Assembly (NCBI GenBank): GCA_977020255.1
Contig: CDROCS010005637.1
Location: 1-64,000 of the forward strand
From: Obrimoposthia wandeli
Taxonomy: Eukaryota
Length of the DNA stretch: 64,000 bases
Direction: 5' to 3'
Both the position numbers and the translations under genes were made by a program. The notes beneath the pieces are model-generated. The model was not told the origin of the DNA. It did no database searches and saw only the letters and a list, made by a program, of their open reading frames with translations. This document shows, in pieces, positions 44,180 to 61,698 of the stretch. Each line of letters opens with the position of its first letter. Within the stretch, counting starts at the first letter, position 1.

Positions 44180-44659
44180 ATGCAAGCAAATACGTATTTA
44201 GATTATGAAGGTATTGTTGGTGAATCTACGGCTAAAGAATTCCCAGATTTAATCACTGTATTATCATTAGACTTTGGTACAAGCCGTGTATTAAGTTCTT
44301 ATACTGGTACTGCGCAAGACCGTGAAGCAAGTTCTGCAAAGCTTAACGACGTAACAATTACTAAGTTACAAGATAAGTCTTCTCCTGATCTTTTTAAAGA
44401 ATCTACGATCGGTAAAGGTAAAAAAGCAATTTTCCACATCACTAAACAAGGCGAAGGCATTGAAGAGATCATGAAAATTGAACTTACAAATGCAATGATC
44501 AGCGGCTTCCAAGTTTCTGTTCAAGGTGACCGTCCTGTAGAAACTATCACAATTAGCTATACAGAAATGATGATGACAGTCACGCCTACAGATGACCTAA
44601 ACAATGTACAAGCTCCACTTGTATATGGTTACAGCGGTGTAACTGGCCAACAAATGTAA
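44180..44659 (+). CDS. hcp: Hcp tube protein (TssD)
   Basis: YLDYEGIVGEST, ITKLQDKSSPDL and ETITISY; 159 aa. Confidence 0.95.
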   Translation: MQANTYLDYEGIVGESTAKEFPDLITVLSLDFGTSRVLSSYTGTAQDREASSAKLNDVTITKLQDKSSPDLFKESTIGKGKKAIFHITKQGEGIEEIMKIELTNAMISGFQVSVQGDRPVETITISYTEMMMTVTPTDDLNNVQAPLVYGYSGVTGQQM

Positions 44660-44673
44660 GTTTGCTGGTTTCA

Positions 44674-44712
44674 CAGTCGGGTGACTTAGTCAGTCGCCCG
44701 ACTGTTTTTTTT
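44674..44712 (+). terminator. Strong intrinsic terminator between hcp and vgrG
   Basis: 13-bp stem CAGTCGGGTGACT/AGTCGCCCGACTG with a 5-nt loop and a T-run tail. Confidence 0.85.
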
Positions 44713-44730
44713 GTTCAGTTAGGAAATAAA

Positions 44731-46632
44731 ATGGCAGCGGCTACTCAACAACATTCAATGATGAAAATCACCACACCATTGGGTGGTGACGCCTTACATA
44801 TTACATCTGTGTCTATGCAAGAGAGTATGTCATGTTTATATGGTATCGATGCCTCGGTTTATTCTGTTGGTAATGAAATAGATCTACAAGCATTATTAGG
44901 CCAATCAGTTACTATCGAAGTGGCAGCAAAAGCAGATGGTAGTGTGCAAACGCGCTATTTAAATGGGATTGCGACGGCTGTTTCTGGTGGTGAAACGTCC
45001 CAGCAAAAGTCGGATGATAAATCGAATGTTTACAATTACGAAATAACAATTAGCCCACAATTTTGGCTCGCTACAATGCGGAGTAATTGCCGGATTTTTC
45101 AAGACGTAAGTATGCTTGATATTGCCACTACTTTGTTTGGTGAGCACAATGTAACGTTTGATGATAAGTCAGGAAAAAGCTTCGTTCCGTATGAATATTG
45201 TGTTCAGTACCATGAGACTGATTATGATTTTTTACAGCGCTTATTCTCTCAAGAAGGGATCTTCTTTTATTTTATCCATGAAAACGGCAGTAATACCTTA
45301 GTGCTGGCCGATGTGGGTTCGGATCATATTGATTGTGCTGAAAGCCCGTTACTGCAAACGGATGATATGGTCTCTGTTCCCCACGTATCTGGGTGGCATA
45401 ATGTGGTTGCCGTTAAACACGGAAAAGTGAGTTTAAGAGCCATTAATTTTGAACAGCCATTACTTAATGTTGACGGTATATCTGGCAGTGCAGATTTTCC
45501 TGGGCATGATAAATTAGAATTATTTGAATATGAATCCGGTAATATTAAAGCGAGTGAAACCACGCTAACCGCGAAATCTTATCTTGATCAACTCCAGGCT
45601 GAAAAACACAAATACGTTGCCATTAGTGATTATCTGACCATTGCTTGCGGCAATAATATCAAGTTTTCTAAACATAATACCGACGCACTTGTTAATAAGA
45701 TTATGCTCGTAACTGAAAATGAGTTAACACTCAGACAAGGTTCGCAACATGATAGATCCTCTAGTGCTGGTATAGATATACACAATGAATTTCACTGCGT
45801 CCCCGCAACAGCGAGTTATCGCCCGAACACGAAAGTACACAAACCACTTATTCGAGGCGTGCAAACTGCAATTGTAACGGGTGGGGCATCCGACGAGATA
45901 TATGTCGATTCATATGGTCGGATCAAAGTTAAATTCTATTGGGATAGACTCGGCACTTCTGACGAGAACAGTTCTTGTTGGATCCGTGTTTCACAAAATT
46001 GGGCTGGTAAAAACTGGGGCGCATTCTTTTATCCCCGTGTTGGCCAAGAAGTATTAGTTTCATTTTTAGACGGTGATGCGTCACAACCTATCGTGATTGG
46101 TGCGATTTACAATGGCGATCAAATGCCCGCTAATCCATTGCCTGCTAACAAAACCCAAAGTGGTATACGTACACATTCGACGACAACAGACGGCAATGCT
46201 AACTGTAATGAACTGATATTCGAAGACAAAGTCGGTAGTGAGTTGTTAGGATTACGCGCCGAAAAAGACCACCATTTAGTGGTGGTTAATGATCAGACCG
46301 ATACCGTTGGTAATGATAGAACGACCACGGTAACGAATAATGACATATTGACCGTGAGCAATGATCAAACGGAAACCATCAGTAATGACCGAAATACCAA
46401 TGTTGGTAATGACGATACATTAGATGTCGGTAATATTTTTAATCTAAAGGCGGCTTCTGAAATTAATCTCACGGTTGGTTCCGCCAAACTATCGATGAAA
46501 AGTGACGGTACAATAAAGCTTTCGGGTGTCAACATTGAAATATCAGGGACAAATGTAAAAGTTAAAGGCACCGCGACGAATGTTGAAGGTTCTATGGTCG
46601 TGGTAAAAGGTTCTATCGTTAAAATTAACTAA
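44731..46632 (+). CDS. vgrG: VgrG spike protein (TssI), no evolved C-terminal domain
   Basis: ATG 44731 after AGGA; YCVQYHETDYDF, GRIKVKFYWD, SCWIRVSQ, PRVGQEVLVSF, NELIFED and gp5-type beta-helix repeats. Confidence 0.96.
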   Translation: MAAATQQHSMMKITTPLGGDALHITSVSMQESMSCLYGIDASVYSVGNEIDLQALLGQSVTIEVAAKADGSVQTRYLNGIATAVSGGETSQQKSDDKSNVYNYEITISPQFWLATMRSNCRIFQDVSMLDIATTLFGEHNVTFDDKSGKSFVPYEYCVQYHETDYDFLQRLFSQEGIFFYFIHENGSNTLVLADVGSDHIDCAESPLLQTDDMVSVPHVSGWHNVVAVKHGKVSLRAINFEQPLLNVDGISGSADFPGHDKLELFEYESGNIKASETTLTAKSYLDQLQAEKHKYVAISDYLTIACGNNIKFSKHNTDALVNKIMLVTENELTLRQGSQHDRSSSAGIDIHNEFHCVPATASYRPNTKVHKPLIRGVQTAIVTGGASDEIYVDSYGRIKVKFYWDRLGTSDENSSCWIRVSQNWAGKNWGAFFYPRVGQEVLVSFLDGDASQPIVIGAIYNGDQMPANPLPANKTQSGIRTHSTTTDGNANCNELIFEDKVGSELLGLRAEKDHHLVVVNDQTDTVGNDRTTTVTNNDILTVSNDQTETISNDRNTNVGNDDTLDVGNIFNLKAASEINLTVGSAKLSMKSDGTIKLSGVNIEISGTNVKVKGTATNVEGSMVVVKGSIVKIN

Positions 46633-46695: not shown

Positions 46696-46983
46696 ATGGG
46701 AAACCCCGCCGCAACAATGACCAGTTTTCATGTTTGCCCAGCAAGTAGCGGCCCTGTTCCGCATGTTGGCGGTCCCGTGATAGTCGGTTCGCCAACTGTG
46801 CTTATTGGTGGTAAACCAGCGGCACGATTGGGTGACAAAATGATATGTTGTGGACCACCAGATACGATTGTCTCGGGCTCCGGAACGGTACTGATAAACG
46901 GTAAACCAGCAGCTCGAATGGGTGATTCTGGTGCGCACGGTGGTAAAATTGTTGTCGGTATTCCTACCGTACTTATTGGTTAA
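46696..46983 (+). CDS. PAAR domain spike tip protein
   Basis: NPAAT, KPAARLGD and KPAARMGD motifs with His/Cys Zn ligands. Confidence 0.95.
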   Translation: MGNPAATMTSFHVCPASSGPVPHVGGPVIVGSPTVLIGGKPAARLGDKMICCGPPDTIVSGSGTVLINGKPAARMGDSGAHGGKIVVGIPTVLIG

Positions 46984-46987
46984 CGTA

Positions 46988-48112
46988 ATGGATATAACCT
47001 CACAAACACTCATTGCAGACATTGAAGTCTATTTCGAACAACGTCAACGTTGCTTTGACAATTGTTGGTCGACACAATTACAACTTAGGCAATTGGATCA
47101 GCAGGCTGCAAATTTGTTTTATTTGTTGACCCAACAGCGTCAAACATTAAATACACAGCGACATGATCTCCCTTTGTGGTTAAATTTATTGTTGGCAGGC
47201 ACTGTGGCAGATACTATTCAGTTATTAGCCAGTCAAAGTAAAATCACTCAATCAGAACTTATTTGTATCCAGTGGTGGGCGCAACAAAACAGTGGTGCAG
47301 CCTTAATCTCGGCGCTTATCTCCCTTGAAACAACAAATTCAGATCTTACAAAGCAGCTGTTATGCGTGATTGGCAGTACGACGACGACAATTAACGATCA
47401 GTTCAACTTTCTTCATGTTAGTGATATCAAACCGTGTATCAATTTTATTAATCAGCATTTAGGTAGAGCATCTCAAATCTGGTTTAGCCATTTTATGAAC
47501 GATGAAAACACTGATGATGATAATAAAAAGTTGCTCGCATTAACCTTATGCAGGGGTAATAGTGTCGCTAAACTGCCTGTACTAAGTAGCATTTTGTTGG
47601 CAGACAAATGTTTACTTAAACAGTACGCGGTCCAGGGCGATAGCAAATTAGTTACTACGCTGATAAATGAGTTATCTAAACATAATGATAATGCCAAGTT
47701 TGTATTATCCATGATGGCGTTTAGTGGTTATAAGCAGTTTGTTCCTTGGTTGATCCAAATGCTAACGGCAGGTTTTTTAAGTCATGCAGCCTTTGCTGCT
47801 TTGCATACCTTATTGGGGGCTGAATTTGAAAAACAGTTACCAGAAGGATTATATGGTGAGTACGAACCTGAGTCTCAGGTTGAATTACTTGCGGAGTTAA
47901 AACAATCTTTAAGTGATTGGTGGTCTGTACATCGTGATGATTATCCGGAACGAATATTGGCGGGCAACGCGATTAATGAACAAAATATTTCATCGATCTG
48001 GCAACAAGGCAATATTTTGCAATGTGAAGTGGCTGCTTATCATTATTGGTGTATGAAGGTGGATCATCGTCTCACAGATGCTCGCGGCTTTAATTCTGGA
48101 GCTATGTTATGA
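46988..48112 (+). CDS. T6SS-associated HEAT-repeat-like protein, TIGR02270-like
   Basis: ATG 46988 chosen because the ORF-track GTG overlaps PAAR. Mostly helical. C-terminal WWSVH..ILAG.AI..WQQG..AAY pattern recalls TIGR02270. Confidence 0.55.
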   Translation: MDITSQTLIADIEVYFEQRQRCFDNCWSTQLQLRQLDQQAANLFYLLTQQRQTLNTQRHDLPLWLNLLLAGTVADTIQLLASQSKITQSELICIQWWAQQNSGAALISALISLETTNSDLTKQLLCVIGSTTTTINDQFNFLHVSDIKPCINFINQHLGRASQIWFSHFMNDENTDDDNKKLLALTLCRGNSVAKLPVLSSILLADKCLLKQYAVQGDSKLVTTLINELSKHNDNAKFVLSMMAFSGYKQFVPWLIQMLTAGFLSHAAFAALHTLLGAEFEKQLPEGLYGEYEPESQVELLAELKQSLSDWWSVHRDDYPERILAGNAINEQNISSIWQQGNILQCEVAAYHYWCMKVDHRLTDARGFNSGAML

Positions 48113-49101
48113 AAAGTGTAATGAACAGTGTGATGAAATTTACCATAACAGCTTACGCTGGAGAATTTGGTTGCGCACCGCAGTCATTCGATACCGTGTT
48201 GGCCGGTCAGGCACCCCGTATCGATTTAACCGAACTTGAACAATACGCACAATTTAAACCAGCCAAACAAGTGGCGTTTACGCAACCAGTATTAGCAGAT
48301 AACCGCATTGACCGTTGGAAAACATTGATTAATACGGCGCTGGAAAACACTAACTTAATTGAATCAAGTCAGCATGCGGCATTATTAATGGTACTGCCTT
48401 TTGTTGACGCTAAGTTTTGCGAAATGCAGACGCAACTCATTGACTCTGTGGTTGAGATTTTGCCCGCGTGGACAGCACATCCCAATAGTCAATATTACTT
48501 GCTGGGAAGCGCTGGTTTTTATCAAGCACTGCGCCAGGCTGATGTATTACTCAGTAGTGACCTGGAACAAGTGGTCATCGGTGCTGTAGACAGCTGGGCA
48601 ACGGAGCAGGGTTTATTGAAGTTTGTCAGCCAGTACAGAGATTATTCCTCTGTTGTATTACCGGCTTCAGAAGGGGCTATTTTTGTCGTGCTATCACGGC
48701 AAGCACTATCTCCACAAACACAAGGTATCGAAGTATTGTCTTGTGGCATGGATGCTGTGATTGACAGGCATGCACCGAATGGCTTAATTACACTGATTGC
48801 CGATAGTGTCGCAAAGCAAGCAGCACCTATGCAGTATTTGTCTCTGTGTCACTCTGGCGATGAGCGTTTAGATCAGGTTGGCCATAATACCCTATCAGCA
48901 GTGTCAGGACTTTTCGACGCCAATACCCAATTTATCACCCCACAAGTAACCCAAGGTGATATTGGTGCTTGTTATAGCTTGTTACATTTTCTAGTGAATT
49001 ATCATCAATATAAACAGAATATCTGGCAGGGTACTAGCCTGCAGATTGATACCTCGTCATTACCTTATGTAGGTACCGCGACGTATCGATGGTTTGATTA
49101 A
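48109..49101 (+). CDS. T6SS-associated thiolase/3-oxoacyl-synthase-like protein (PRK06147-like)
   Basis: GSAGF..AL, IGAVDS, SEGAIFVVL and GDIGA motifs. ATGA overlap with the upstream gene. Confidence 0.6.
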   Translation: MKSVMNSVMKFTITAYAGEFGCAPQSFDTVLAGQAPRIDLTELEQYAQFKPAKQVAFTQPVLADNRIDRWKTLINTALENTNLIESSQHAALLMVLPFVDAKFCEMQTQLIDSVVEILPAWTAHPNSQYYLLGSAGFYQALRQADVLLSSDLEQVVIGAVDSWATEQGLLKFVSQYRDYSSVVLPASEGAIFVVLSRQALSPQTQGIEVLSCGMDAVIDRHAPNGLITLIADSVAKQAAPMQYLSLCHSGDERLDQVGHNTLSAVSGLFDANTQFITPQVTQGDIGACYSLLHFLVNYHQYKQNIWQGTSLQIDTSSLPYVGTATYRWFD

Positions 49102-49197: not shown

Positions 49198-51390
49198 ATG
49201 CGATATGCACTTAAACAACTTGATGAGTTGACCACTGCACACTTAGGCGCAGTAATGATGCCACGAGCAGCTGCGCGGATTATTCGCCGCCAAGCGGGAA
49301 TGGGTCATCGAGACAACATTGCCAAGCTGGTTCAGCATCGTAAAAAAGTCGGGCAAAAACGACCCAATGCTGATACGTTAGAGTTAATCGCTAAATGTAT
49401 TGAAACGGGTAAACTGGTTTTAATTCGTATACCGGCACCAGTCATATCAAGTGTTGTTTCGCCAAGTGGTAATGTCAATCACATGTTACCAAGAGCCTTG
49501 GCTAACAAGGTTCATGCGTTAGCCGAACTCATACTGGTCGAAGATATTGAAAATCATATCAGGAATGAAAACAGCGTAAATCAATCAGGTGGATATACCA
49601 GTGCACCTGCGGTTGTTGCTGCGACAACTGCCAGCACAGCACCTGCTGGGAGCCGGAGTATGGCTAATGCGGCTGCGGCCCCAACTACTGCACAGATAAA
49701 AGAATCAATCACATTAACCTATGACTATGTTGATGGACAACCTACCGAAGATGTCCCCTATATAGTTAATCATGCGGGTGATATATACGAAGGTGTACTG
49801 AGTGCAGGGCGTGCGCTTATCTCTGATGTTGACCCTGGTTCATATTCTGTTGAGTACAAAGCGGTTGATGAAAATGAAATTGTTACATTAAGAAATGAAC
49901 TAAAAACTAATTTAGACGGGATGATTGCAGAAGTAAAAGCAAAAGCAAAAATCCAAGAAGCATTAATAGAGAAAGAAAGTTATGTGCTGCAGGGACTTAT
50001 TTATTCTGGTGCCTTTTTTACTGGTTTATACGAGAGTGGCAGCAGTATTGCGAGCGGACTTGTTGAAGCTGTAGAATCAGGTGCTGAATTTGCTTTTGAT
50101 GTCGGTGCAGCTTGTTGGCGAATACTTAAGCTTTTAGGTACGGGTGATTTAGCCGGTTTACGTCGTGAGTTTCAAGATATTGCCAAGCAGGGCGGCGAAA
50201 CATTTGACGCAATAAAAGATTGTTTCAAAACACTCTATATTATCGCTATGGATGGAGAGTCTCGGTCTTTGCTGGCTGATTTCCCTGAAGCCTACTTCGA
50301 TGCCCATTCAAGTGTTGAGAAAAAAAGGTTAGTCGGGAAGCTCGCGTTTGAGGTTATCTTTGCAATAGCAACATTTGGAGCTGGTGCTGCGGTATCTGCA
50401 ATTGCCAAATCTAAATATTTTGTTAAAGCAGGTCAAGCGCTGCAAGATATTACTAAGCACATTAAATTAGAGAAACTGAACCATAAGCGCGATGGAACAA
50501 CTAATGATGATGTGCTTGATGAAGCAGAGCGTATTGATGATGAGTTGGTGCTTTTACCACCCGTTAATATGGGGGTACTACATGCTCAAAAACTAATAGA
50601 CGAATTACCAGAGGATATTAGAGGCAATTACCGTGTTCATACCAACGCTGATGGTAAAGTTATCGTGGTAAGGAAGGATGGTAGTAAACCGCCTAAATTA
50701 CGCTATGTAAACGGCGAGTTGGTCACCGCAAGTGACAACGTGAGTGTGTTTGCCGCGATAAAAGAAAAACTCAACATTAGCCATGCAGATTTGAAGCCTG
50801 AACAGGTTAAAGAGCTTAAGTCTCTTGAAGCAGAGCGAAATCTTGCTGTTGTTAAACGTGATAAGGCACTGTTAAGTGGGGACGATGTTGCACTTAAGGT
50901 GGCTCAACAAGAAATGCGAAATGCCAGTGAACGTATTGGCGAGTCTGCAGGTCGAATTTATGTCGGTAATAATTATCCAAATGCCAAGCCGCTAGATGCG
51001 GGATTATTGAATAACAGTAAACAAGGGCAGTTTGACCAAATCTATCTAGACGGTGATAAGATAATTGTGATTGAAGCCAAAGGTGGTGGCGCGACTTGGG
51101 GTAGTAAGAAAGTTGGTGTAGAAGTTGCGCAACAGGGCTCGTCAGATTATTTAGATTCTACCATCAAAAATTATAATGTCACTCTGGAGAAAGCATCAAA
51201 TGACCCGCGATTAGATGCTCCTGGCCATGAAGCGTTTACTGCTAAAGTGGACAAATTGGAAGAAACGGTTGCTGCATTGAATAATGCGAGCGATAGTAAG
51301 TCAATAGAGTACATTGGCGTAAAACAAAAAGTAACCGATACAGGTTTAAAAGACAGTATTGTTATATTTAAATTTGAGTTGGGTTTTTAG
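49198..51390 (+). CDS. T6SS effector with a C-terminal PD-(D/E)xK-fold nuclease toxin domain
   Basis: C-terminal E..G(E)..GQFDQIY..IIVIEAKGG..G..QQGS.DYL motif, central hydrophobic region and an immunity gene immediately downstream. Confidence 0.75.
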   Translation: MRYALKQLDELTTAHLGAVMMPRAAARIIRRQAGMGHRDNIAKLVQHRKKVGQKRPNADTLELIAKCIETGKLVLIRIPAPVISSVVSPSGNVNHMLPRALANKVHALAELILVEDIENHIRNENSVNQSGGYTSAPAVVAATTASTAPAGSRSMANAAAAPTTAQIKESITLTYDYVDGQPTEDVPYIVNHAGDIYEGVLSAGRALISDVDPGSYSVEYKAVDENEIVTLRNELKTNLDGMIAEVKAKAKIQEALIEKESYVLQGLIYSGAFFTGLYESGSSIASGLVEAVESGAEFAFDVGAACWRILKLLGTGDLAGLRREFQDIAKQGGETFDAIKDCFKTLYIIAMDGESRSLLADFPEAYFDAHSSVEKKRLVGKLAFEVIFAIATFGAGAAVSAIAKSKYFVKAGQALQDITKHIKLEKLNHKRDGTTNDDVLDEAERIDDELVLLPPVNMGVLHAQKLIDELPEDIRGNYRVHTNADGKVIVVRKDGSKPPKLRYVNGELVTASDNVSVFAAIKEKLNISHADLKPEQVKELKSLEAERNLAVVKRDKALLSGDDVALKVAQQEMRNASERIGESAGRIYVGNNYPNAKPLDAGLLNNSKQGQFDQIYLDGDKIIVIEAKGGGATWGSKKVGVEVAQQGSSDYLDSTIKNYNVTLEKASNDPRLDAPGHEAFTAKVDKLEETVAALNNASDSKSIEYIGVKQKVTDTGLKDSIVIFKFELGF

Positions 51391-51417
51391 GGATGGGTTA
51401 CGAATGGACTTGATATT

Positions 51418-52257
51418 ATGATTAAAACACATTACACGTCGAATGATAGAATCTATAATCGGTTTATGAAAGAGTATGATAAATTTCAGTTGAGATCGGT
51501 TTCAAATTTACAAGATGACGCCGCTTGGAGTGCACCAATTCAGTTTGCTCGAAACATCGAAGCTCTTGCTAAAGAATCGTTTCGTAATGGAGAAACGGAG
51601 GAAGCTTGGTTGTATCTGAATCGAGCCACTCAGTTAGGTATGGGGATATTTCAAAGCAATGCTCATGACGGTATCGCATTTCCGTTTGAGTTTGATAATG
51701 AATACCTTGAGGTGGTGGGAAAGAAAACCAGTAAGCGTACTAATGATACGGATTGGTTAAGAGCTTTATTTTGCGCCATCATTCGACGCAATCAGGGCGC
51801 AATTGATTTTTTAATGACGGTGGATAATGAGGTGTTTACTCACTCTAGTCAGGCACCGCAAAATACCCCGTTTGATTATGCATTGGCTGATTTATTTCGC
51901 GCAGTGTTTAGAGGCGGTGATTTACCGCTAGCACTGAAAGCGGCCATGACCAGTTTTGACCCGGACATTTACCATAAAGAAGCGTATCTTTATGTCAGTC
52001 GTTTAGAATGGCCTTTGGTTGCAATAATGCGAACTATCTTCACTGCGAATGCAGAGGTTGAGTTTAACCAAACAATGGAAAAGGCATTGGTTCTGCACAA
52101 GGAATACTACTGTACAGACGAGAACGACTGTGATTATTTGGGTGTTATCCCTTTAGGCTTAACCGCGCTGGCGGCACTGGCTTATGACCATAAGGGCTAT
52201 AAAATCACGGTTGAAAATGAATACATTCCCAAGTGGTTGGTTGAGATTGACGGTTAA
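51418..52257 (+). CDS. Imm49-family immunity protein
   Basis: All-alpha; W..AL.CAII.R and PLGLTALAALAYD..GYKITVENEYIPKWLV C-terminus. No signal peptide. Confidence 0.8.
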   Translation: MIKTHYTSNDRIYNRFMKEYDKFQLRSVSNLQDDAAWSAPIQFARNIEALAKESFRNGETEEAWLYLNRATQLGMGIFQSNAHDGIAFPFEFDNEYLEVVGKKTSKRTNDTDWLRALFCAIIRRNQGAIDFLMTVDNEVFTHSSQAPQNTPFDYALADLFRAVFRGGDLPLALKAAMTSFDPDIYHKEAYLYVSRLEWPLVAIMRTIFTANAEVEFNQTMEKALVLHKEYYCTDENDCDYLGVIPLGLTALAALAYDHKGYKITVENEYIPKWLVEIDG

Positions 52258-52286
52258 CACTTAAGTTAGAGTTTATACGAAATGCG

Positions 52287-52316
52287 AAATACACTTCAAT
52301 CGAGGTGTATTTTTTT
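52287..52316 (+). terminator. Intrinsic terminator after the toxin-immunity pair
   Basis: AAATACACTT-caatcg-AGGTGTATTT followed by a T run. Confidence 0.7.
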
Positions 52317-52335
52317 GTCTTAAATTCATGCTTTT

Positions 52336-52384
52336 ATAGTGAATAGTGAATAGTGAATAGTGAATAGTGAATAGTGAATAGCGA
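52336..52384. repeat. Heptamer VNTR (ATAGTGA) x6 perfect plus 1 imperfect
   Basis: Direct reading, ~70 bp upstream of the ARH start. Confidence 0.95.
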
Positions 52385-52456
52385 AGAGTGTAAATTGGTA
52401 TTCTTGTTCTCATCTAAAGCGTTTTAAAACACTTATTGGTAATATGGAATGAAAAT

Positions 52457-53641
52457 ATGATGTTAGATGATAATGGTAACCCTATCCCTAAAGAGATCGA
52501 AGATTATTTAAAACGTTTAGAATTAGTTCCCAATGATCTTCGTTTCCCTCATATGACAAATAAATTCACAGGTTCAAGAATACCTACTAAAACACAATGG
52601 ATGGACAAATATTTCGTATTCCGTAAAGCAGTGCCAAACCCAACAGATGAAGAATGCAAAGACTACTATCAACGAATTAATATAGATTGTGATGATGATA
52701 TAAATCGTTTTCGAGGTGCCCTGATAGGTACAGCAATTGGGGATGCTCTGGGCACTACATTAGAGTTTACAGTGCCAGGTTCATTTACGCCTATTGATGA
52801 CATAGTTGGTGGTGGTCCATTTAACCTGAAAGCGGGGCAATGGACAGATGATACCAGCATGATGTATTGCCTTGCTCACAGCCTTGTCCGTACAGGGGAA
52901 TGTGACCTCAATGATCAGATGTCATTATATTCTCGCTGGTGGAAGGATGGCGTGTTTAGTGTAAATGGTGAGTGCTTTGATATTGGCAATACAGTTGTAT
53001 CTGCACTGCAACGGTATGCTCGAACTGGCGACCCTAAGTCTGGTGATACACATCCAATGTCAGCAGGTAATGGCTCATTAATGCGACTCGCACCTATTCC
53101 AATTCGTTATTTTGATAGTTTTGAAGAGACAGTCAAGTATGCAGCGTTAAGTTCTATAACTACACATGCAGCAACAGAAGCCGTTGATGCTTGCAGGTAT
53201 TTTTCTGGCCTACTTTGGGGGGCGTTACATGGTGTGAGTAAATCGGTACTTTTAGATGGAATTTACTCACCGATTGAAAACTATTGGAATAATAATCCAT
53301 TATGCTCGTCGTTGGTAAAAATGTTAACTAGCGAAGATTACAAAGTAAAATCTGCACAGCAAATCAGAGCTAGCGGTTATGTTATGCATACTCTAGAAGC
53401 AGTGCTCTGGGCTTTCTATAATACTGACAATTTTAAGTCTGGCGCACTCAAGGCTGTAAATTTAGGTGAAGATGCTGATACCACAGGTGCAGTTTATGGG
53501 CAGTTAGCGGGTGCGTTTTATGGTGAAAGGGTAATTCCATTTAAGTGGACAAGAAAAATTGCCGAAGCACATGTTTTTTATTTAAAAGCTGAAGAATTAA
53601 AAGAGCTGGTGTTGGCTAAACGCTCAAAAGGATCTCTTTAG
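52457..53641 (+). CDS. ADP-ribosylglycohydrolase (ARH/DraG/Tri1-like) with a ~75-aa N-terminal extension
   Basis: ATG 52457 after GGA; GALIGTAIGDALG, GGGPF, WTDDTSM, CFDIGNT, GNGSLMR, SGYV..LEA and GEDADTTGAVYGQLAGA. Confidence 0.92.
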   Translation: MMLDDNGNPIPKEIEDYLKRLELVPNDLRFPHMTNKFTGSRIPTKTQWMDKYFVFRKAVPNPTDEECKDYYQRINIDCDDDINRFRGALIGTAIGDALGTTLEFTVPGSFTPIDDIVGGGPFNLKAGQWTDDTSMMYCLAHSLVRTGECDLNDQMSLYSRWWKDGVFSVNGECFDIGNTVVSALQRYARTGDPKSGDTHPMSAGNGSLMRLAPIPIRYFDSFEETVKYAALSSITTHAATEAVDACRYFSGLLWGALHGVSKSVLLDGIYSPIENYWNNNPLCSSLVKMLTSEDYKVKSAQQIRASGYVMHTLEAVLWAFYNTDNFKSGALKAVNLGEDADTTGAVYGQLAGAFYGERVIPFKWTRKIAEAHVFYLKAEELKELVLAKRSKGSL

Positions 53642-53872
53642 ATACCAACGCTCTATCGCCCCACATGAGTAGCCTAAAGTATGACAAAGGTACTAATTTA
53701 ACGCGTTTCATTGGGATTGATTCGCGATCAAGGTTAGTATAAGTAATTGATTATTCCTTGGTTAAGGATTCAACCTCGGCAAAAATTCCCAAGATATTTA
53801 AATATGCAGATTCCTGCGTATGTTGAATTGCTTGAGGAATTCAAACTTCACTTAAGTTAAATGGATTTAGCG

Positions 53873-55840
53873 ATGCAGTACACACTTAAAAATATCAACG
53901 AACTTAGGGTGGCAGATCTTAAAACGGTCATGCGTCCTGCTGCTGCCGTCCGCTTAATACAGGGTCAGTCAGAACTTGGGGCAAACCCCAATATTACTAA
54001 TGTAACCGACTTTAATGTTGGCACTAATAACAATTCAGCCAATAATAATAACGTTGATCAACTATCACGTCATCTTGAAACGGGTAATGTTGTCATTGTA
54101 CAAAGTGATCCTTTGGATGAATTATCGGTTTTATCATCTGTTGGTCGATTAAGCACTAATTTACCTGAAGCATTAAGTTCAAAAGTTAAAGATCTATTTG
54201 TTGCTGTGCGTTCAACGAGTAGTATAAACAGATCAATTCCATATGAACTTATCTCTAAGCAATCCGCTATTAGTAGTTTGGCTGCAGAGCAACAAGCAAA
54301 GGCTGATGTCAATGCGGCAAACAAGACTGACGCTCACCCTTCAGCTTCAAGGGTAAACAACCCTGAGACAAATACCGCAAATGCATCAAATGGTGCTTCT
54401 ACCAGATCATCTAATCCCTATCAGAGTAATCATACACCGGTGCTCTACTATGAAATAAATGTTGAATTTGCAGGTCAGTGGGCAAGGAACAGTGCTTCAT
54501 TGTTTTTAGAGAAAACGAATGAACAAGATAAAGCCAATGCAAGGCCAAGAGCCGATCGTAATCTTGATCATCGAAGTCTGTCCCGTTTTAAAAACATAGA
54601 TAATGAACCTCGAAATCTTTACTTAAATATACCAGACAAAAACCGTTCTGCACCATTGCAGTTGTTACTTGCTGAAAATATAGTCCCCGTCGAAAAAGAC
54701 ACTGAGATGGATGAGTGGGACAATGTATTGGTACCAGTTGTCCCTATGTATTATACCGATGGCGCAAAGACTAAAAAGAATGCGAAGGTATATGACTCTG
54801 GCTACATATATATTATCTGGCAAGGCAAATTATGGCGAGAACTTAAAGTTGCCCGTGGTGGTTATTTCCGAGATGTAGACCTTAATGCGACACATAAATC
54901 TCAGATGGCTGCTGCAAACACACAGACATACAGGCATGTTGATGTTGCACTAGTGGACGAAGAATATGGTCAATATTATTCATCTGAACCTTTTGAAGTG
55001 TGGGAAAAAGGTAAAAAAGTCTTTAGTGGAACGTTGGATATGTTCGGTCAAACCCGGCTGTTTGGTTTATCGGAACAAGAAGTAGATATCAAATTGCCCA
55101 AAGCAAATTGCACTGTCACTGTTGAAACAGAAAAAACTTCGAATGTAACACAAAAGACAGACCCTATTTACCGAGAGGCAAAGGGGGCATCTTTGCCTAA
55201 TGTTTTGTTGCCATACAAAATAATGGGTGAAGTACAGCAAGATCTTTATGCCATTTATAAAACAAAGCAACTATCAGATAGTCAGATCAGTTATTTAGAA
55301 TCAAACTACAAAGAGCAAGCTAAGCCTTTAGCTGAATTATCAAGTTACAGTGATAATCAATCTTTCGATTCAGCCAATGAAACTGTTTCTGCATTGGTAT
55401 TGCCATCAGAGGCGGAAAAAGATCCTGAAAGTTACAAATTAGTGAACAAACAAGTGGGCCAAAATATAGCCGCTATATTTTTAAACCCAGTAAATAAGGG
55501 TATCGAATTTAAATACCATACCAGTGATTTTCAACAATTTGGTTCGTCAGAGAATCAACCTGATGATTATTTTGAATTACGTGATAGCCGAATTAAAGAT
55601 CAAACAGAAGAACAAAAGCAACAAGCAGCAAATGAAGATGAAAAACCACTTTGGAAACAAACTGTGTCATTACTGGATTGTGAAGATATTGAAAGCGGAA
55701 TCAAATCTATCCGCTTTTCTTCGGTTCCAGGCGATGTCAAAGAGGTTGATCTAATTCGTGGCAATAAAGTGCAAGGTGAGAATGATGAGTACACCTTCTT
55801 TTATATTTATGAAAATGTACCCGCCGCTGAATTTGCTTAA
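53873..55840 (+). CDS. MIX-domain T6SS co-effector, VP1388-like
   Basis: ATG 53873 after GGA; EWDNVLVPVVP..SGYIYIIWQGKLWRELKV..GYFRDVDL MIX-type motif. First gene of a three-gene unit. Confidence 0.75.
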   Translation: MQYTLKNINELRVADLKTVMRPAAAVRLIQGQSELGANPNITNVTDFNVGTNNNSANNNNVDQLSRHLETGNVVIVQSDPLDELSVLSSVGRLSTNLPEALSSKVKDLFVAVRSTSSINRSIPYELISKQSAISSLAAEQQAKADVNAANKTDAHPSASRVNNPETNTANASNGASTRSSNPYQSNHTPVLYYEINVEFAGQWARNSASLFLEKTNEQDKANARPRADRNLDHRSLSRFKNIDNEPRNLYLNIPDKNRSAPLQLLLAENIVPVEKDTEMDEWDNVLVPVVPMYYTDGAKTKKNAKVYDSGYIYIIWQGKLWRELKVARGGYFRDVDLNATHKSQMAAANTQTYRHVDVALVDEEYGQYYSSEPFEVWEKGKKVFSGTLDMFGQTRLFGLSEQEVDIKLPKANCTVTVETEKTSNVTQKTDPIYREAKGASLPNVLLPYKIMGEVQQDLYAIYKTKQLSDSQISYLESNYKEQAKPLAELSSYSDNQSFDSANETVSALVLPSEAEKDPESYKLVNKQVGQNIAAIFLNPVNKGIEFKYHTSDFQQFGSSENQPDDYFELRDSRIKDQTEEQKQQAANEDEKPLWKQTVSLLDCEDIESGIKSIRFSSVPGDVKEVDLIRGNKVQGENDEYTFFYIYENVPAAEFA

Positions 55841-55876: not shown

Positions 55877-56995
55877 ATGATGACGAATACAAAAAAAAAT
55901 ACCAAGAAGAATGCAACTTTATGTTTTTTACTGCCTCTAGTACTACTTTTCGCAGGGTGTGATAATAGTGAGCTAGAACCTGAAATCAAACCTAAAGCAG
56001 CGAAAGCAGTTGCTGTAGTCGATGATGGTCGTGTTTATGTTACCGAGCATAACTATGTTAAGTATGACGATAATAACGGCCGCCCAAGACATTATATTTT
56101 CAAGGCGAAAGAGTGGCCAAGAGAAGACATCAATGATGCCAGTTCTTACGACTTACCACGTACCGTTTTTCGCTGGAATAACCAGAAATCACCTGATGGT
56201 TCGAATGCTGAATATGAAAGTAGAGACAAGATCTGGAGTATCAAAACAGACGGCACAGATTTACGTCTAGTAGCAGATGACTTTCAAGGTTATGTACGAT
56301 ACATGCGCCGTTCACCGGACAATCGTTATTTAACTTATGCTTATTCAGGTATAGAAGGCACTCATAAGTCCTTGTTTGATCTGAAAACGGGTGAAACTAA
56401 GGTGTTGGCTACTTACCCTGGCCTGCCAATCTTCTTATGGGCCGAAGATAGCAGCTACTTCTATTATGCTAATGGGCGTAATTATTATAAATATGATATA
56501 GCATCAGGCGAAGAAGAAGTTGTTGATATTAGGATGTCGCAAAACTCGGTCATCTATGATGGAAAACGATTTGTAGTCAATGCGAAAGGTATTAGTGTCA
56601 TCGATGAAACAAATAATAACAGTTTATATTTCATTGTCCCTGAAAAAGGTGTTGATATGCAGCTTTCTAAATTTCATAAAAAGTCAATCAGTCCAACGGG
56701 ACGTTATGTCTGGGCAACAACCAGAGATAAGAAGTTTTTTATTGATACTAAGACCAAAAAAGTATTACGCATGCCATTGGATGACAAACGCTATATGAGA
56801 ATGGAGATGATAGGGCTTGGCGCTCATTATGGAGCAACAGGAGCTGCTCGTAGAGGGGTTGAAAAACGAGATGAAAATGGCAATAGAACATTTATTGTTA
56901 GGTGGGGTACCAAAGGCACAGGTCATACAGCATCACATCCTTCACTCTATAACGCTTTCGCTAATGACGGTGCTTTGCTAAAGGTGGACTTATAA
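55877..56995 (+). CDS. Lipoprotein beta-propeller (TolB-like) immunity protein, VP1389-like
   Basis: Lipobox LFAGC, WSIKTDGTDLR and SPDNRYL propeller repeats. TAATG-coupled to the downstream toxin. Confidence 0.7.
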   Translation: MMTNTKKNTKKNATLCFLLPLVLLFAGCDNSELEPEIKPKAAKAVAVVDDGRVYVTEHNYVKYDDNNGRPRHYIFKAKEWPREDINDASSYDLPRTVFRWNNQKSPDGSNAEYESRDKIWSIKTDGTDLRLVADDFQGYVRYMRRSPDNRYLTYAYSGIEGTHKSLFDLKTGETKVLATYPGLPIFLWAEDSSYFYYANGRNYYKYDIASGEEEVVDIRMSQNSVIYDGKRFVVNAKGISVIDETNNNSLYFIVPEKGVDMQLSKFHKKSISPTGRYVWATTRDKKFFIDTKTKKVLRMPLDDKRYMRMEMIGLGAHYGATGAARRGVEKRDENGNRTFIVRWGTKGTGHTASHPSLYNAFANDGALLKVDL

Positions 56996-59900
56996 TGGCT
57001 GCCAACAAAAAAAACTACCGTGACATCCCTGCAAATTATTATCTCTTTGGTTGTTATTTTCCATCAACAGAAGGGGAAGGTGGTACAAACACTTTTCCTA
57101 CATGGAGTACTGAAGCCGATCTTACTGGTGAACTTTTACTTAAAAACATCAAACCTTTAGTCAATATGCCAATAGCCGTCAATCTTGATTCATCTAAACC
57201 GGCACTGTGGGGAACGAATGAAGTAGGCCAACTTATGGTACTCTCAAATAAAAGGGAGAAAGTAAACAAAATAACGGTCGTTAAAAACAGTGATAGCAAA
57301 GATACAGCTGGTCCAAAACCAGCTGATGAATATATTGCTTTACGCAAAGAAAGTCCCGTTAACAGTCTAGTGGAAGAGCAATATAAGCTTTCCTTCCCAC
57401 CACTAACGTTGCTTGCAAGTCTCGCGACGATTAACAAAACCAGTGCTGATATTTGTAGTCAGCTGGCTGGAATAGTTAAAACCATCGGTTTACCTTCTTC
57501 GCCAAGTACGAATTCTCTTAGCAGTGCTTACACCTTAACGACTATTTCACTGAATCAATTAGCCGAAGAAATAAAATCGGATGGAAATGGTTATTTGAAA
57601 CCAGAAGACAAAACGTATAACGATTGGCGCAACAAAATGGTCGAAAAGGGACTTCCTATTAAGGGGTTCTTGTTACCTCAGGTGCATTGCTGTGCGGTAG
57701 TGTTCTCGCATAAAGAGTATAGCGGTGCAAAGGTTACGTTGCAAAAGATGCACGTTAACGAGAATGGTGATACTGAATTAATTTTAGTGGGAGAGTCACA
57801 GTCTGTGTCGGTTAAAGAGGGCGGGGATCCTCAACGCCCTTGCGCAGTGTTCAACCTTGACCCCATCGCTTTTAATGAAGGTATATATAGTATTAATGTT
57901 TACTTTGATCCGGTTAATTATGATGATGATATCCCTGACTGGATAGCTAAAGCCAATATTACCGAAAATAATGTAGATGGCGATATCTCATATGAATACA
58001 CCTTACGTGAACAGATCAGTTTTCACCAAAGCACGCCAGTAGGAAAAATTGCCATTGTTTGTGGTGATATGATCTCGTTGGAAGAAAGTTTGATTTATCA
58101 ATTTCCGCAAGAACTTGCTGCAATGGAAAAATATATTACTGATAGTTCTTCAAAAAATACCGCGAAAGAGTCACTGGGTCAGCAAAGTATAGGTTTATTA
58201 AAAGCCATCAGTAAAACTGCAGGAAGTGAACTCCATAGCATGAGTAGTACTGGCTTTAATAAATACAGCCGCGATTTTAATAGTGAATCATTTATAAATA
58301 TAAGTAAGACTTTTTGGGGGGAGTTAGATCAAAAGAACTTACCAGACTCCATGGTCGCATCAGCAGAATTGGTATTTGGTATTCAAGCCATCCCCGCTGC
58401 TTTGAAAGAGCTTAAAACAAAAATAAGATTAGAAGGCAATGCGCGTTATACGACGCCAATGCGGGTCGAACATTTCTTACGTGCAAATGTTATTAATATA
58501 AAAGCAATAAATGAAGAGATTACAAGCGTTAGGAGTTTGCTGAGCTCAGATGGAAAATATAAAACACTTGTAACTAAAATTGCACCTGATTGGTTCTTTA
58601 ATTTCTCATCGAAAATGGGTAATTCACTTCCCGCTATTACTACACTAACCAGTATGTCAGATTTTTATAGTGAATATAAAAACATGCAAGGGAAACAAGT
58701 GAATGCAAAAGACAATAAAACGACGTTTGAAGATATAGCGACAGATTATCTTGGTAAAGTTCCTGTGTGGACTACTGAACAAAAATCACCACTCGAGAAA
58801 CTAAATCAAGTCGTTGGTGAATTTAATGACACAAACAATAGTGTTATAGAATCCGATGCTGTCAAAGTTGTAGATAGTGCTGTAATCAAAGGTGATGAAC
58901 GCGGATTAGCTGCATACATCCAGTTTCATTTTAACGAAACACAAGAAACACTCGAAACGGAACAAAGCAAAACGCTTATTGGTCAAGTTGCTGAATTGGT
59001 TAAAGAAAATAAAGATATTATTGTTGAAATTGACGCTCATGCCTGTCAAGTCGGTCAACAAGATCAAAATGAAAAAGTGGCAAAAGACAGAGCATTAAAT
59101 ACCCAAAATGCGTTTCTAGCGCTTCTCCCCGAAGGGCACGAAAAACAATTTGTTGTTAATAGTTTTGGTGAGAGTAAACCTATTGTTGATGGTGATGATG
59201 CTTATACAGCAGAAAATAGAGCTGATCGAGCTGCTGTAGCGGCCAATCGTCGCGTTGAAATTCGTGTGTATTTGCCTGTTTTCTCTTTGATTTTTCCTCC
59301 TAGTCGTACCGGAAGTAAAGCGCTAGAAAAAGCACGTTTAGTGTACGTTCTTTCATTATTAGATATCAGTGAAGCACAAAAGAAACTCATGTTAACCGCA
59401 TTGCAGGGCGTTATGGGTGTAGCATCTTTTGTTCCAATATTAGCGCCTTTTGTCGCAGGTGTTATGCTAGCACAAGTTGCCGTTGGGATTGCTGAGTCAG
59501 GTATCAGCTTAGTTGACGATTTACTTTTTGAAAACCAGTTAAAAAACTTGAGAAAGAACAGCAAGAAAGAAGATCATTTAAGTGCATTAGCTAAAATTAA
59601 TTTTCGTATGTTGAACGACGTAAAAGATATTAATACTTCTTTAATGGGAGAGTTTACAAGTTATGACGATCTTAAAGCACATCTAAAGAAACCAAATGTT
59701 CAGAAGGAACTACTGAAACGTTATAAACTTCGTGCACTTTCCATGAATGGTCTTATGTTAATCATTCTGCATATCTCCAATAAGCACGGACAACATATAA
59801 CTCAAGAACTCGTGAATAAATACAAACTTGAAGAGTATATTCAACGTTATATCATGAGTGACGATTGGTCTGTTATGGCCGGCCAGAGAGGTCTGGCGCA

Positions 59901-61698
59901 ATGGTGGATAGCAAGCATTGAAAGCGTGCCTAGAATGAGAGGCTCTTCAGTCCATAAACACGGTAATGTTACTGGTGCGTTTAATAAGATATTTCCAATT
60001 CAGACAAAGTTGTTTGAACAAGACTTCGCGCAAGAAAATAAAGATATGTTCACTCAATTTGTGAATAATTTTAATATTAGCCAAAGAGATTTACTTGCAA
60101 AGGATATTGGATTTTCTCGCATGCTTATTTGCGATCCAAATGGTACTAAATGGGAAACCTATACAAATTGGCTTAAGTCTGGTCTCTCTAACAGGCTTAG
60201 TCCCTTTCATAAAATAAAGTGGCAGATTGTATTAACTAAAGAGGCATCAGAAATTAGTGCCGATGCATTTTTCGTTGATATTAATTATCAAAGAAAAGAC
60301 ATCCTTGATGTTATTGGTCCCTCTTTTGAAGCCCTGTTTTTCCCTCATTCTGTGAATGATTTTTCTGATGATTGTGATAACGAGATTAAAACTTATTATA
60401 ATAATCAAGATAAAAGTTCATTACTAGCAGTCGAATTTGACCCTTCATATTGGTTTGGCGAACACTGTATCAGTGGAATGAAGCCTTTAATGTCAAAGGC
60501 TGACTTTGACATGGCAGATTTCTTTTGGTCTATGCAAGCATTTTTTACCGATTCGAAATCTGGTTTCGATCGTTATGTTGAGGAAGGTCGACTAAGACAA
60601 ATGCGTTATCAGTTTAACTTAGTGACCAAGTCTAACAACAAGATCCCACTATCTTATAGTATTAAATATCCAAAATATAAGCAGATGCGTTACGGCGTCC
60701 ATGATAATAGAGCTGCTAATATAAATTATTACGATGGCGCATTTAATTTATCAAGGAAAATTAGTGAATCCGATTTACTTGTAGAAAACTTCGTGATGTC
60801 AACTAAAGCTACAAAATCTCATTCTCACTCTGTGTTGGAAGATGTAGGCTTTACTTCAATTGCTATTGAATATGATCATCAATTAACCATGCTTAAAGAC
60901 GACGTCGAATTGAATCAATTCGATTGGTCCGCTGAAAAACCTGCTTCAGTTTATATTATGTTGGTAGGTAAGAAGGTTGCCAAAGAGGACTATATAAAAT
61001 ACAGCCAAGAGTGGGATGAAGTCGCAGTTAGTATGCAGCTAGCCTTGTCTAAAGAAGCGGGTGCCTTTGAAGCCACGAGTGGCCAATATGCAGGCCCTAC
61101 TTATCATACCGATATGCACTATATCGGAGAACTATCTTATTCTGAATACAATGATAATTCGAACAACAAGTATGACGGAAATAAAGATGTTTATATTGAA
61201 ATTTATAATGACAAATTACAAGTTCCAAAGGAGTTCAATGAATTTGTCAAACAATCGAAAGATAGAATGAACTCAGTAGATCATGAGCTTGGAACCGCTA
61301 ATGATAACTTCCACGTGTATGTGATGAAGTTTGATCTGTTTTATATTTCTCCTACTGGTAAGAAAATATCAGGTCTACGTCCATTTGGTGATATAAAATT
61401 GGGTGATAGAATTGCTGATACATTCTTGTCTTTTGTTCACCTTAGTCAATCTAACACTGACAAAGTGACTGAATATATATTGCCAACATCAAATTTCAAA
61501 CTACCAAAACATTATTTTAGGACTTCAACCCCTTGGGGGAACGAGGTCCTCGGTGTGATTGAAGATAAACGTATAGACAGGAAAGCCGCAACTTATTACA
61601 ACAGCCTTGATGATAAATCTCAAAATGACTGGCAAGACAAATGGATTAAAGATTATCCGACAAATGTAAACGCGCCAAAACCAGCATCTATGGGCTAG
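56995..61698 (+). CDS. Large OmpA_C-domain T6SS toxin, VP1390-like
   Basis: 1567 aa; central OmpA-like domain (IQFHFNE..HAC..KDRA..SFGESKP..NRRVEI) followed by a hydrophobic hairpin. Same three-gene context as the Vibrio binary effector module. Confidence 0.7.
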   Translation: MAANKKNYRDIPANYYLFGCYFPSTEGEGGTNTFPTWSTEADLTGELLLKNIKPLVNMPIAVNLDSSKPALWGTNEVGQLMVLSNKREKVNKITVVKNSDSKDTAGPKPADEYIALRKESPVNSLVEEQYKLSFPPLTLLASLATINKTSADICSQLAGIVKTIGLPSSPSTNSLSSAYTLTTISLNQLAEEIKSDGNGYLKPEDKTYNDWRNKMVEKGLPIKGFLLPQVHCCAVVFSHKEYSGAKVTLQKMHVNENGDTELILVGESQSVSVKEGGDPQRPCAVFNLDPIAFNEGIYSINVYFDPVNYDDDIPDWIAKANITENNVDGDISYEYTLREQISFHQSTPVGKIAIVCGDMISLEESLIYQFPQELAAMEKYITDSSSKNTAKESLGQQSIGLLKAISKTAGSELHSMSSTGFNKYSRDFNSESFINISKTFWGELDQKNLPDSMVASAELVFGIQAIPAALKELKTKIRLEGNARYTTPMRVEHFLRANVINIKAINEEITSVRSLLSSDGKYKTLVTKIAPDWFFNFSSKMGNSLPAITTLTSMSDFYSEYKNMQGKQVNAKDNKTTFEDIATDYLGKVPVWTTEQKSPLEKLNQVVGEFNDTNNSVIESDAVKVVDSAVIKGDERGLAAYIQFHFNETQETLETEQSKTLIGQVAELVKENKDIIVEIDAHACQVGQQDQNEKVAKDRALNTQNAFLALLPEGHEKQFVVNSFGESKPIVDGDDAYTAENRADRAAVAANRRVEIRVYLPVFSLIFPPSRTGSKALEKARLVYVLSLLDISEAQKKLMLTALQGVMGVASFVPILAPFVAGVMLAQVAVGIAESGISLVDDLLFENQLKNLRKNSKKEDHLSALAKINFRMLNDVKDINTSLMGEFTSYDDLKAHLKKPNVQKELLKRYKLRALSMNGLMLIILHISNKHGQHITQELVNKYKLEEYIQRYIMSDDWSVMAGQRGLAQWWIASIESVPRMRGSSVHKHGNVTGAFNKIFPIQTKLFEQDFAQENKDMFTQFVNNFNISQRDLLAKDIGFSRMLICDPNGTKWETYTNWLKSGLSNRLSPFHKIKWQIVLTKEASEISADAFFVDINYQRKDILDVIGPSFEALFFPHSVNDFSDDCDNEIKTYYNNQDKSSLLAVEFDPSYWFGEHCISGMKPLMSKADFDMADFFWSMQAFFTDSKSGFDRYVEEGRLRQMRYQFNLVTKSNNKIPLSYSIKYPKYKQMRYGVHDNRAANINYYDGAFNLSRKISESDLLVENFVMSTKATKSHSHSVLEDVGFTSIAIEYDHQLTMLKDDVELNQFDWSAEKPASVYIMLVGKKVAKEDYIKYSQEWDEVAVSMQLALSKEAGAFEATSGQYAGPTYHTDMHYIGELSYSEYNDNSNNKYDGNKDVYIEIYNDKLQVPKEFNEFVKQSKDRMNSVDHELGTANDNFHVYVMKFDLFYISPTGKKISGLRPFGDIKLGDRIADTFLSFVHLSQSNTDKVTEYILPTSNFKLPKHYFRTSTPWGNEVLGVIEDKRIDRKAATYYNSLDDKSQNDWQDKWIKDYPTNVNAPKPASMG

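Follow-up and report, generated by a model that had tools for sequence, protein, structure and literature searches.

The window analysed here, the first 64,000 nucleotides of contig CDROCS010005637.1 (positions 1 to 64,000 of the forward strand) in the genome assembly of Obrimoposthia wandeli (GCA_977020255.1), carries a type VI secretion system (T6SS) cluster followed by cargo genes, two of which, encoding a 730-residue polymorphic toxin and a 655-residue MIX co-effector, begin with a common N-terminal module that is the subject of this report. The cluster is complete (Fha, TssK, TssL, TssM, TagF, PP2C, TssA, TssB/C, ImpE, TssE, TssF, TssG, ClpV, Hcp and VgrG), and the gene order past vgrG is PAAR, a HEAT-like protein, a β-ketoacyl-synthase-like (KAS-like) protein, the 730-residue toxin, an Imm49-family immunity gene, a Tri1-like hydrolase and a three-gene triad headed by the co-effector. 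With 70-90% identity, proteins of Moritella sp. and Moritella sp. 28 are the nearest to those of the window. This Moritella-like contig sits in a 1.35-Gb, 6912-contig assembly produced by a eukaryote genome project, and therefore represents a symbiont, an associate or a contaminant.

Residues 1-108 of the toxin (49198-49521) and of the co-effector (53873-54196) align without gaps at 35 identical positions, concentrated in residues 1-35 (16/35) and 66-108 (15/43). Not one of 200,000 shuffles reached 35 identities (mean 7.0, standard deviation 2.5, maximum 20; z = 11.2), and comparison of the two full proteins by BLASTP recovered the N-terminal block at E = 4e-15 and nothing significant past the linker that follows it. 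These data confirm that the module is a real shared domain, far beyond chance. They also bear out, exactly as to the 35/108 count and by retranslation as to the two protein segments, an earlier note made from the letters of this DNA, which had reported the alignment. In a six-frame search of the whole assembly the module was found in these two genes alone.

Once orthologues are aligned the conserved block reaches approximately residue 125-130, and is thus longer than the 108 residues first claimed. Three subfamilies described below (A, B and C) align nearly without gaps across about 115-130 residues, and in all members the module starts at residue 1. A linker rich in Ala, Ser, Thr, Asn and Pro follows in every aligned protein, and in the two window proteins the sequence beyond it is unrelated, the arrangement that the earlier note had described. 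The start of the co-effector at 53873 is reasonable because all of its homologues align from that Met, though the open reading frame (ORF) opens at 53861 (MDLAM...).

Predicted fold and comparison with named delivery domains

An AlphaFold2 model of the module, built from a 21-sequence alignment, has a predicted local distance difference test (pLDDT) score of 84.9 and a predicted template modelling (TM) score of 0.75. The model comprises a strand (residues 2-7), helices at 13-18 and 22-33, which form a helix-extension-helix, two further helices at 44-54 and 60-69, a second strand (73-78) and a long helix at 99-130. No solved relative was detected by Foldseek against the PDB (best E 1.3) or by VIA-align against 48,161 chains, where the best match (Z 4.3) was due to the long helix. 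Matches to AlphaFold DB clusters were to the N-termini (residue 1 to approximately 110) of many uncharacterised proteins of 103-859 residues, the best being A0A1I5AU21 (E 2.8e-8, TM 0.72); Q1N502, A0A5J6PB83, A0A368V6R6 and K1JR46 are among the others.

Among the fold relatives of the module is the N-terminus of the VP1388 family. VP1388, a MIX co-effector, forms with the periplasmic immunity protein VP1389 and the toxin VP1390 the 'binary effector module' of Vibrio parahaemolyticus T6SS1; VP1388 is secreted together with VP1390, and both co-precipitate with VgrG1 (PMC8728615). Foldseek aligned the module with residues 5-109 of A7N4P2 from V. campbellii (TM 0.51, probability 0.99), a protein that was verified as a VP1388-family member heading a triad-like operon beside ClpV. 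An AlphaFold model of the N-terminal 125 residues of a Vibrio VP1388-family protein (pLDDT 80.6) has the same order of secondary-structure elements as the module, including the helix-extension-helix, and the two models have at least 19 AlphaFold DB accessions in common among the top 30, all of them N-termini, of proteins of 90-859 residues. Between the Moritella and Vibrio sequence profiles, hhalign gave an in-register alignment of 70 columns that falls short of significance (E 0.16). On the predicted structures the module belongs, together with the VP1388 N-terminus, to an unnamed fold family, as a lineage-specific member that has diverged fast. The two domains occupy the same place in an orthologous protein family, but their sequence similarity is not significant. 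VP1388-like/MIX proteins are the only ones on which the Vibrio version has been seen to date; the Moritella module, by contrast, is also carried by nuclease toxins and small tether-like proteins and belongs to another type of T6SS cluster. The earlier note had called the domain new; it is indeed discrete, N-terminal, linked to T6SS and without a name in Pfam or NCBIfam, but it has relatives at the level of fold.

Scans of the module against Pfam and NCBIfam gave no match, in Pfam even at E <= 10, and the Pfam VasX_N model did not detect it. It is nevertheless conceivable that the module is a diverged copy of a named delivery domain, namely RIX, PIX, FIX or part of MIX, an alternative that we consider quite improbable. 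RIX is a 55-residue, Arg-rich N-terminal domain consisting of two α-helices joined by short loops; it is both required and enough for secretion by the T6SS and is restricted to the Vibrionaceae and Moritella viscosa (PMC10435454). Its presence in this genus favours such an identity, as do its location at the extreme N-terminus and its restriction to a single lineage. RIX is also borne both by polymorphic toxins and by small secreted adaptors that contain TTR and transport a neighbouring effector, which recall subfamilies A and C, respectively. However, the module is predicted to adopt a different fold, an α/β arrangement with two strands, four short helices and, at the C-terminus, a helix of 30 residues, and hhalign aligned its profile with residues 1-42 of the RIX protein Tme1 (sequence taken from the authors' deposited model) over 1 column at a probability of 0.3%. 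RIX proteins are, in addition, encoded by orphan genes outside T6SS clusters, whereas the module is found mostly within a cluster. The entries listed in the available part of the RIX supplement do not include the Moritella accessions of the module, which is weak evidence in the same direction.

PIX, an N-terminal domain of approximately 140 residues from the Enterobacterales, is likewise necessary and sufficient for secretion, and binds VgrG (10.1101/2023.07.16.549128). Like the module it is a folded, order-restricted domain found on polymorphic nuclease toxins, and its binding to VgrG is the mechanism proposed below for the module. Some of the AlphaFold DB matches are pyocin-like proteins of approximately 290-340 residues that could be PIX proteins, making a link at the level of fold a lead. 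PIX proteins, however, are orphans of the Enterobacterales, and the hidden Markov model (HMM) search described below retrieved no Vibrio or enterobacterial protein.

The remaining named domains, MIX, FIX and WHIX, are T6SS-specific markers N-terminal to interchangeable toxins. Both the earlier note and PMC10734457 place the present region beside the MIX signal, consistent with a part of MIX, but MIX spans residues 242-423 of VP1388, and its central motif (hRxGhhYhh) is absent from module residues 1-130, occurring in the co-effector as YDSGYIYII at residue 307, such that MIX lies approximately 180 residues downstream of the module in the same protein, in the order that the note had proposed. 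FIX is an approximately 80-residue motif (residues 43-121 of V12_14465) reported never to occur alongside MIX, whereas the module begins at residue 1 and accompanies MIX in the co-effector. WHIX, a bipartite domain, spans about 450 residues and has WHxxxH as a conserved motif; this description does not fit a domain of approximately 125 residues in which neither copy contains Trp. The distinction from FIX and PIX is drawn from their descriptions and not from sequence comparison. The module is not RIX, MIX or WHIX, in agreement with the earlier note as regards MIX and RIX.

Distribution of the module and its association with one type of secretion cluster

A search of 1.84 billion representative proteins with an HMM built from 13 module sequences gave 9 matches at E <= 1e-3, which were essentially all Moritella-like, with one spurious. 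The spurious one, an 1824-residue Gram-positive surface protein (E 5e-6), matched in 5 stretches, the best of them at residues 1234-1306, and was set aside as an artefact of repeats or composition. When 301 genomes of the order were sampled, the module was present in 6/13 Moritellaceae species genomes and in 0/288 of the others, a marginal match (E 0.007) being disregarded, while a profile search of genome contigs returned a single locus, in the Moritella metagenome-assembled genome DT_65. In seven genomes all copies lie inside or at the edge of one type of T6SS cluster; DT_65 carries four within 26 kb of one such cluster, one of them a broken second co-effector. The remains of a broken second co-effector downstream of the triad (G001:C22:54299-55575) are a 108-residue ORF corresponding to module residues 44-138 and a 308-residue ORF from the MIX region.

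Subfamily A consists of toxins that have residues 1-227, 1-368 or 1-471 in common with the window toxin and beyond that point carry C-termini of at least five unrelated kinds, among them Ntox15 (PF15604) and AHH (PF14412), with Imm49, Imm11 or T6SS_Tdi1_C immunity genes downstream. Subfamily B is the VP1388-type MIX co-effector. Subfamily C, first recognised in this analysis, comprises proteins of 217-315 residues (one of 559) in which the module and linker precede one to three β-rich repeats; their genes, always located between tssG and clpV, adjoin those of large VasX_N (MIX) toxins that contain LysM segments. Pfam gives only sub-threshold MG4 matches to the repeats, and 'TTR/Ig-like' is our reading of their sequence. 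The linkage to T6SS neighbourhoods and the diversity of C-termini, both of which the earlier note had proposed to examine, amount to what would be the classic pattern of an N-terminal delivery domain on polymorphic T6SS cargo, by analogy with RIX, whose range of architectures is similar.

Subfamily A toxins also occur as orphans. In Moritella sp. 28 (CP056121.1) a P2-like prophage region contains an AHH toxin together with an Imm11 gene, and a metagenome contig carries an Ntox15 toxin with a Tdi1-type T6SS immunity gene. The AHH toxin adjoins genes for Phage_GPA, Ogr_Delta, a CI repressor and an integrase, and its location beside P2-like genes suggests phage-borne spread of T6SS cargo. The module thus picks out effector-immunity pairs away from the cluster, the use as a marker that the earlier note had envisaged, but with a sequence family so narrow, confined to the Moritellaceae, this use is limited.

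The co-effector provides a means of comparing N-terminal domains between secretion systems. Its residues 190-655 are 35-43% identical to Vibrio and Aliivibrio VP1388-family proteins of 550-590 residues, and together with the 372-residue lipoprotein and the 1567-residue OmpA-domain protein it matches the VP1388/VP1389/VP1390 triad. The 1567-residue protein is homologous to the third triad gene of two Moritella genomes, G012 and G009, and corresponds in position to a 1211-residue OmpA protein in V. campbellii; TasL was considered as its identity and was dropped in favour of a VP1390-like protein. G012 and G009 contain a second, Vibrio T6SS1-like cluster with a σ54 activator, ClpV, a 172-residue Hcp and a 689-residue VgrG, the last being 28% identical to the window VgrG. 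This cluster has its own VP1388/89/90-like triad (clusters and triads at G012:C1:3210000-3229999 and G009:C1:1650000-1689999, the G009 triad with two tandem VP1389-like lipoprotein genes), and there the N-terminal domain of the co-effector is of the Vibrio type. In the window and in genome G001, where the triad stands beside the other type of cluster, that domain is of the Moritella type, and similarity between the two types of co-effector starts only past the module and linker.

The VgrG proteins show the same partition among the 13 Moritellaceae genomes. The window-type VgrG is present in 6/6 genomes with the module and 0/7 without it, and the 689-residue VgrG in 2/2 genomes with the Vibrio-type triad and 0/11 without it. 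The occurrence of different N-terminal domains in one co-effector family beside different clusters suggests that the domain is a system-specific loading label. A third, Vibrio-like variant of the N-terminal domain, followed by VP1388-like sequence, was also observed, in proteins of 806 residues (G001:C5:207986-211234) and 983 residues (G009:C1:2919260-2922559).

Gene setting and accessory proteins

The genes that surround the two module copies are listed in Table 1. The 95-residue PAAR protein falls below the 100-residue limit of the ORF list and its gene was found separately, between vgrG and the first accessory gene. The ORF listed for that accessory gene, 396 residues from a GTG at 46922, overlaps the PAAR gene; translation probably begins at the ATG at 46988, giving a HEAT-like protein of 374 residues. 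The Tri1-like hydrolase has no adjacent ADP-ribosyltransferase toxin and looks like an orphan immunity gene of the effector island.

Table 1. Coordinates of the module copies and of the cluster and cargo genes around them
Feature	Position	Strand	Evidence
Hcp	44180..44659	+	PF05638, E 4e-30
VgrG spike protein, candidate docking partner of the module	44662..46632	+	PF05954, PF22178, PF04717
PAAR tip protein, 95 residues, candidate docking partner	46696..46983	+	PF05488, E 1.5e-24
HEAT-like accessory protein	46988..48112	+	ESM-Atlas lead to HEAT_2/TIGR02270-like clusters
KAS-like accessory protein	48109..49101	+	NF004798, E 2.6e-6, far below cutoff; ESM-Atlas lead to KAS N-terminal-like clusters
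730-residue polymorphic toxin, in which the module is followed by an Ala/Ser/Thr linker, a constant region as far as about residue 470 and a variable C-terminal domain	49198..51390	+	Homologue comparison
N-terminal module copy 1, residues 1 to about 130 of the toxin, subfamily A	49198..49590	+	Translation, alignments, AlphaFold model
Imm49-family immunity gene for the 730-residue toxin	51418..52257	+	PF15575, E 1.4e-25
Tri1-like ADP-ribosylarginine hydrolase	52436-53641	+	NF041672, E 7.5e-90, below curated cutoff; PF03747
655-residue VP1388-type MIX co-effector	53873..55840	+	35-43% identity to VP1388 family; MIX-like motif at residue 307; first gene of triad
N-terminal module copy 2, residues 1 to about 130 of the co-effector, subfamily B	53873..54262	+	Translation, alignments
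372-residue lipoprotein, VP1389-like immunity candidate	55877..56995	+	Lipobox LFAGC; 42-50% identity to middle genes of Moritella Vibrio-type triads
1567-residue VP1390-like toxin with OmpA-like peptidoglycan-binding domain, presumed co-effector cargo	56995..61698	+	PF00691, E 3.4e-9

The 730-residue toxin has no Pfam match. Residues 470-730 give an ESM-Atlas lead to Tox-REase-7-like clusters and contain a D...E-A-K motif near residue 600-628; on this basis, and with no curated model, the C-terminal domain looks like a PD-(D/E)xK nuclease. The labels of nuclease effector and MIX co-effector that the two proteins bore in the earlier note are reasonable, the latter in view of the MIX-like motif and the similarity to VP1388.

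The earlier note had also suggested that the module is recognised by the HEAT-like and KAS-like pair encoded upstream of the toxin. A role of this pair as a specific adaptor is doubtful. The two genes do occupy the usual place of an adaptor, between PAAR and the module-bearing toxin, and the genomes with the pair are exactly the six Moritellaceae genomes with the module, the KAS-like gene occurring in the same 6/13. The HEAT-like protein, which has no Pfam or NCBIfam match, is conserved after VgrG in other Moritella genomes. In all six genomes, however, the pair closes the T6SS cluster, and in four of them it is followed by housekeeping genes and not by an effector; moreover, the Vibrio-type cluster likewise has a weak KAS-like gene after VgrG. 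Because the pair ends the cluster without an effector in four genomes, it is better viewed as a component of the cluster, a constant end-piece, than as an effector-linked adaptor, and the suggested recognition is not supported. A complex prediction for the module with both proteins (score 0.00, pLDDT 32-35) counts neither way, a partner in the complex being unfolded in that tool.

A candidate spike-loading domain

The explanation that best accommodates these observations, and one that we hold to be fairly probable, is that the module is a system-specific spike-loading domain. It is preferred because the N-terminal domain tracks the type of cluster and because there are precedents in the binding of PIX to VgrG, in the association of VP1388 and VP1390 with VgrG1, and in RIX. 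According to this model the module would be a compact α/β domain of approximately 125 residues that acts as an 'address' at the very N-terminus and attaches cargo non-covalently to the spike (VgrG-PAAR) of this Moritella T6SS, possibly aided by cluster-specific accessory proteins. The passengers carried beyond the flexible linker would be of three kinds: nuclease or other toxins of the polymorphic type, with a separate immunity gene for each; a MIX co-effector bearing, in its turn, a VP1390-like toxin that acts in the periplasm; and small β-sandwich proteins, encoded beside VasX_N/MIX toxins, that are probably secreted tethers. Different versions of the N-terminal domain would go with different T6SS clusters.

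It is also possible, but unlikely, that the module acts after delivery, in translocation within the prey or in target binding, or that it serves in the producing cell as a handle for a chaperone, stabiliser or regulator. A helix-extension-helix is a common nucleic-acid- or protein-binding element, the nucleases of subfamily A must cross the inner membrane of the prey, and the conserved HEAT-like and KAS-like proteins could be chaperones. A common role on the prey side is, however, hard to see because the module is also borne by a co-effector with a periplasm-acting cargo (PMC8728615) and by the small, non-toxic proteins of subfamily C. Furthermore, the version of the N-terminal domain follows the T6SS cluster and not the type of toxin.

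Several points weigh against spike loading. What the analysis shows is the domain itself, the fold predicted for it, the modular way in which it is distributed and its genetic linkage to the cluster; that secretion needs the module, and what the module binds, we infer. The co-effector could owe its secretion to the MIX region alone, an assumption made in PMC10734457. The co-occurrence of module and VgrG is partly trivial, most copies being physically inside that cluster, and the 806-residue protein with a Vibrio-like N-terminal domain occurs in G001, a genome without the Vibrio-type VgrG. Common descent of the Moritella and Vibrio domains, finally, would rest on predicted structures and position, their profile similarity not being significant (E 0.16).

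A more general proposal, which we offer tentatively, extends spike loading beyond this lineage. The helix-extension-helix N-terminal domain may be a swappable label that chooses among the spikes of co-resident T6SSs, and may belong to a broad, unnamed superfamily, co-diversified with VgrG, that takes in the VP1388 N-terminus, the Moritella module, many uncharacterised N-termini from marine Gammaproteobacteria and, perhaps, PIX.

How cargo effectors that lack a dedicated adaptor find the right spike is an open question, and the partners of MIX, FIX and RIX are largely unknown. Set against this background, the module is a plausible new lineage-restricted T6SS delivery domain, to be placed alongside MIX, FIX, RIX, PIX and WHIX. 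The sequence family has no name and is very narrow, and its restriction to Moritella limits the impact; the fold of the module ties it to the undescribed N-terminus of the well-studied VP1388, which deserves re-examination. Within one system, a small, well-folding domain is common to a toxin, to a MIX co-effector and to tether-like proteins, and in this co-effector family it has a counterpart, matching in structure and different in sequence, beside a second T6SS, sometimes in the same genome. The locus is therefore a natural system for asking whether an N-terminal domain sets the specificity of cargo for one T6SS over another.

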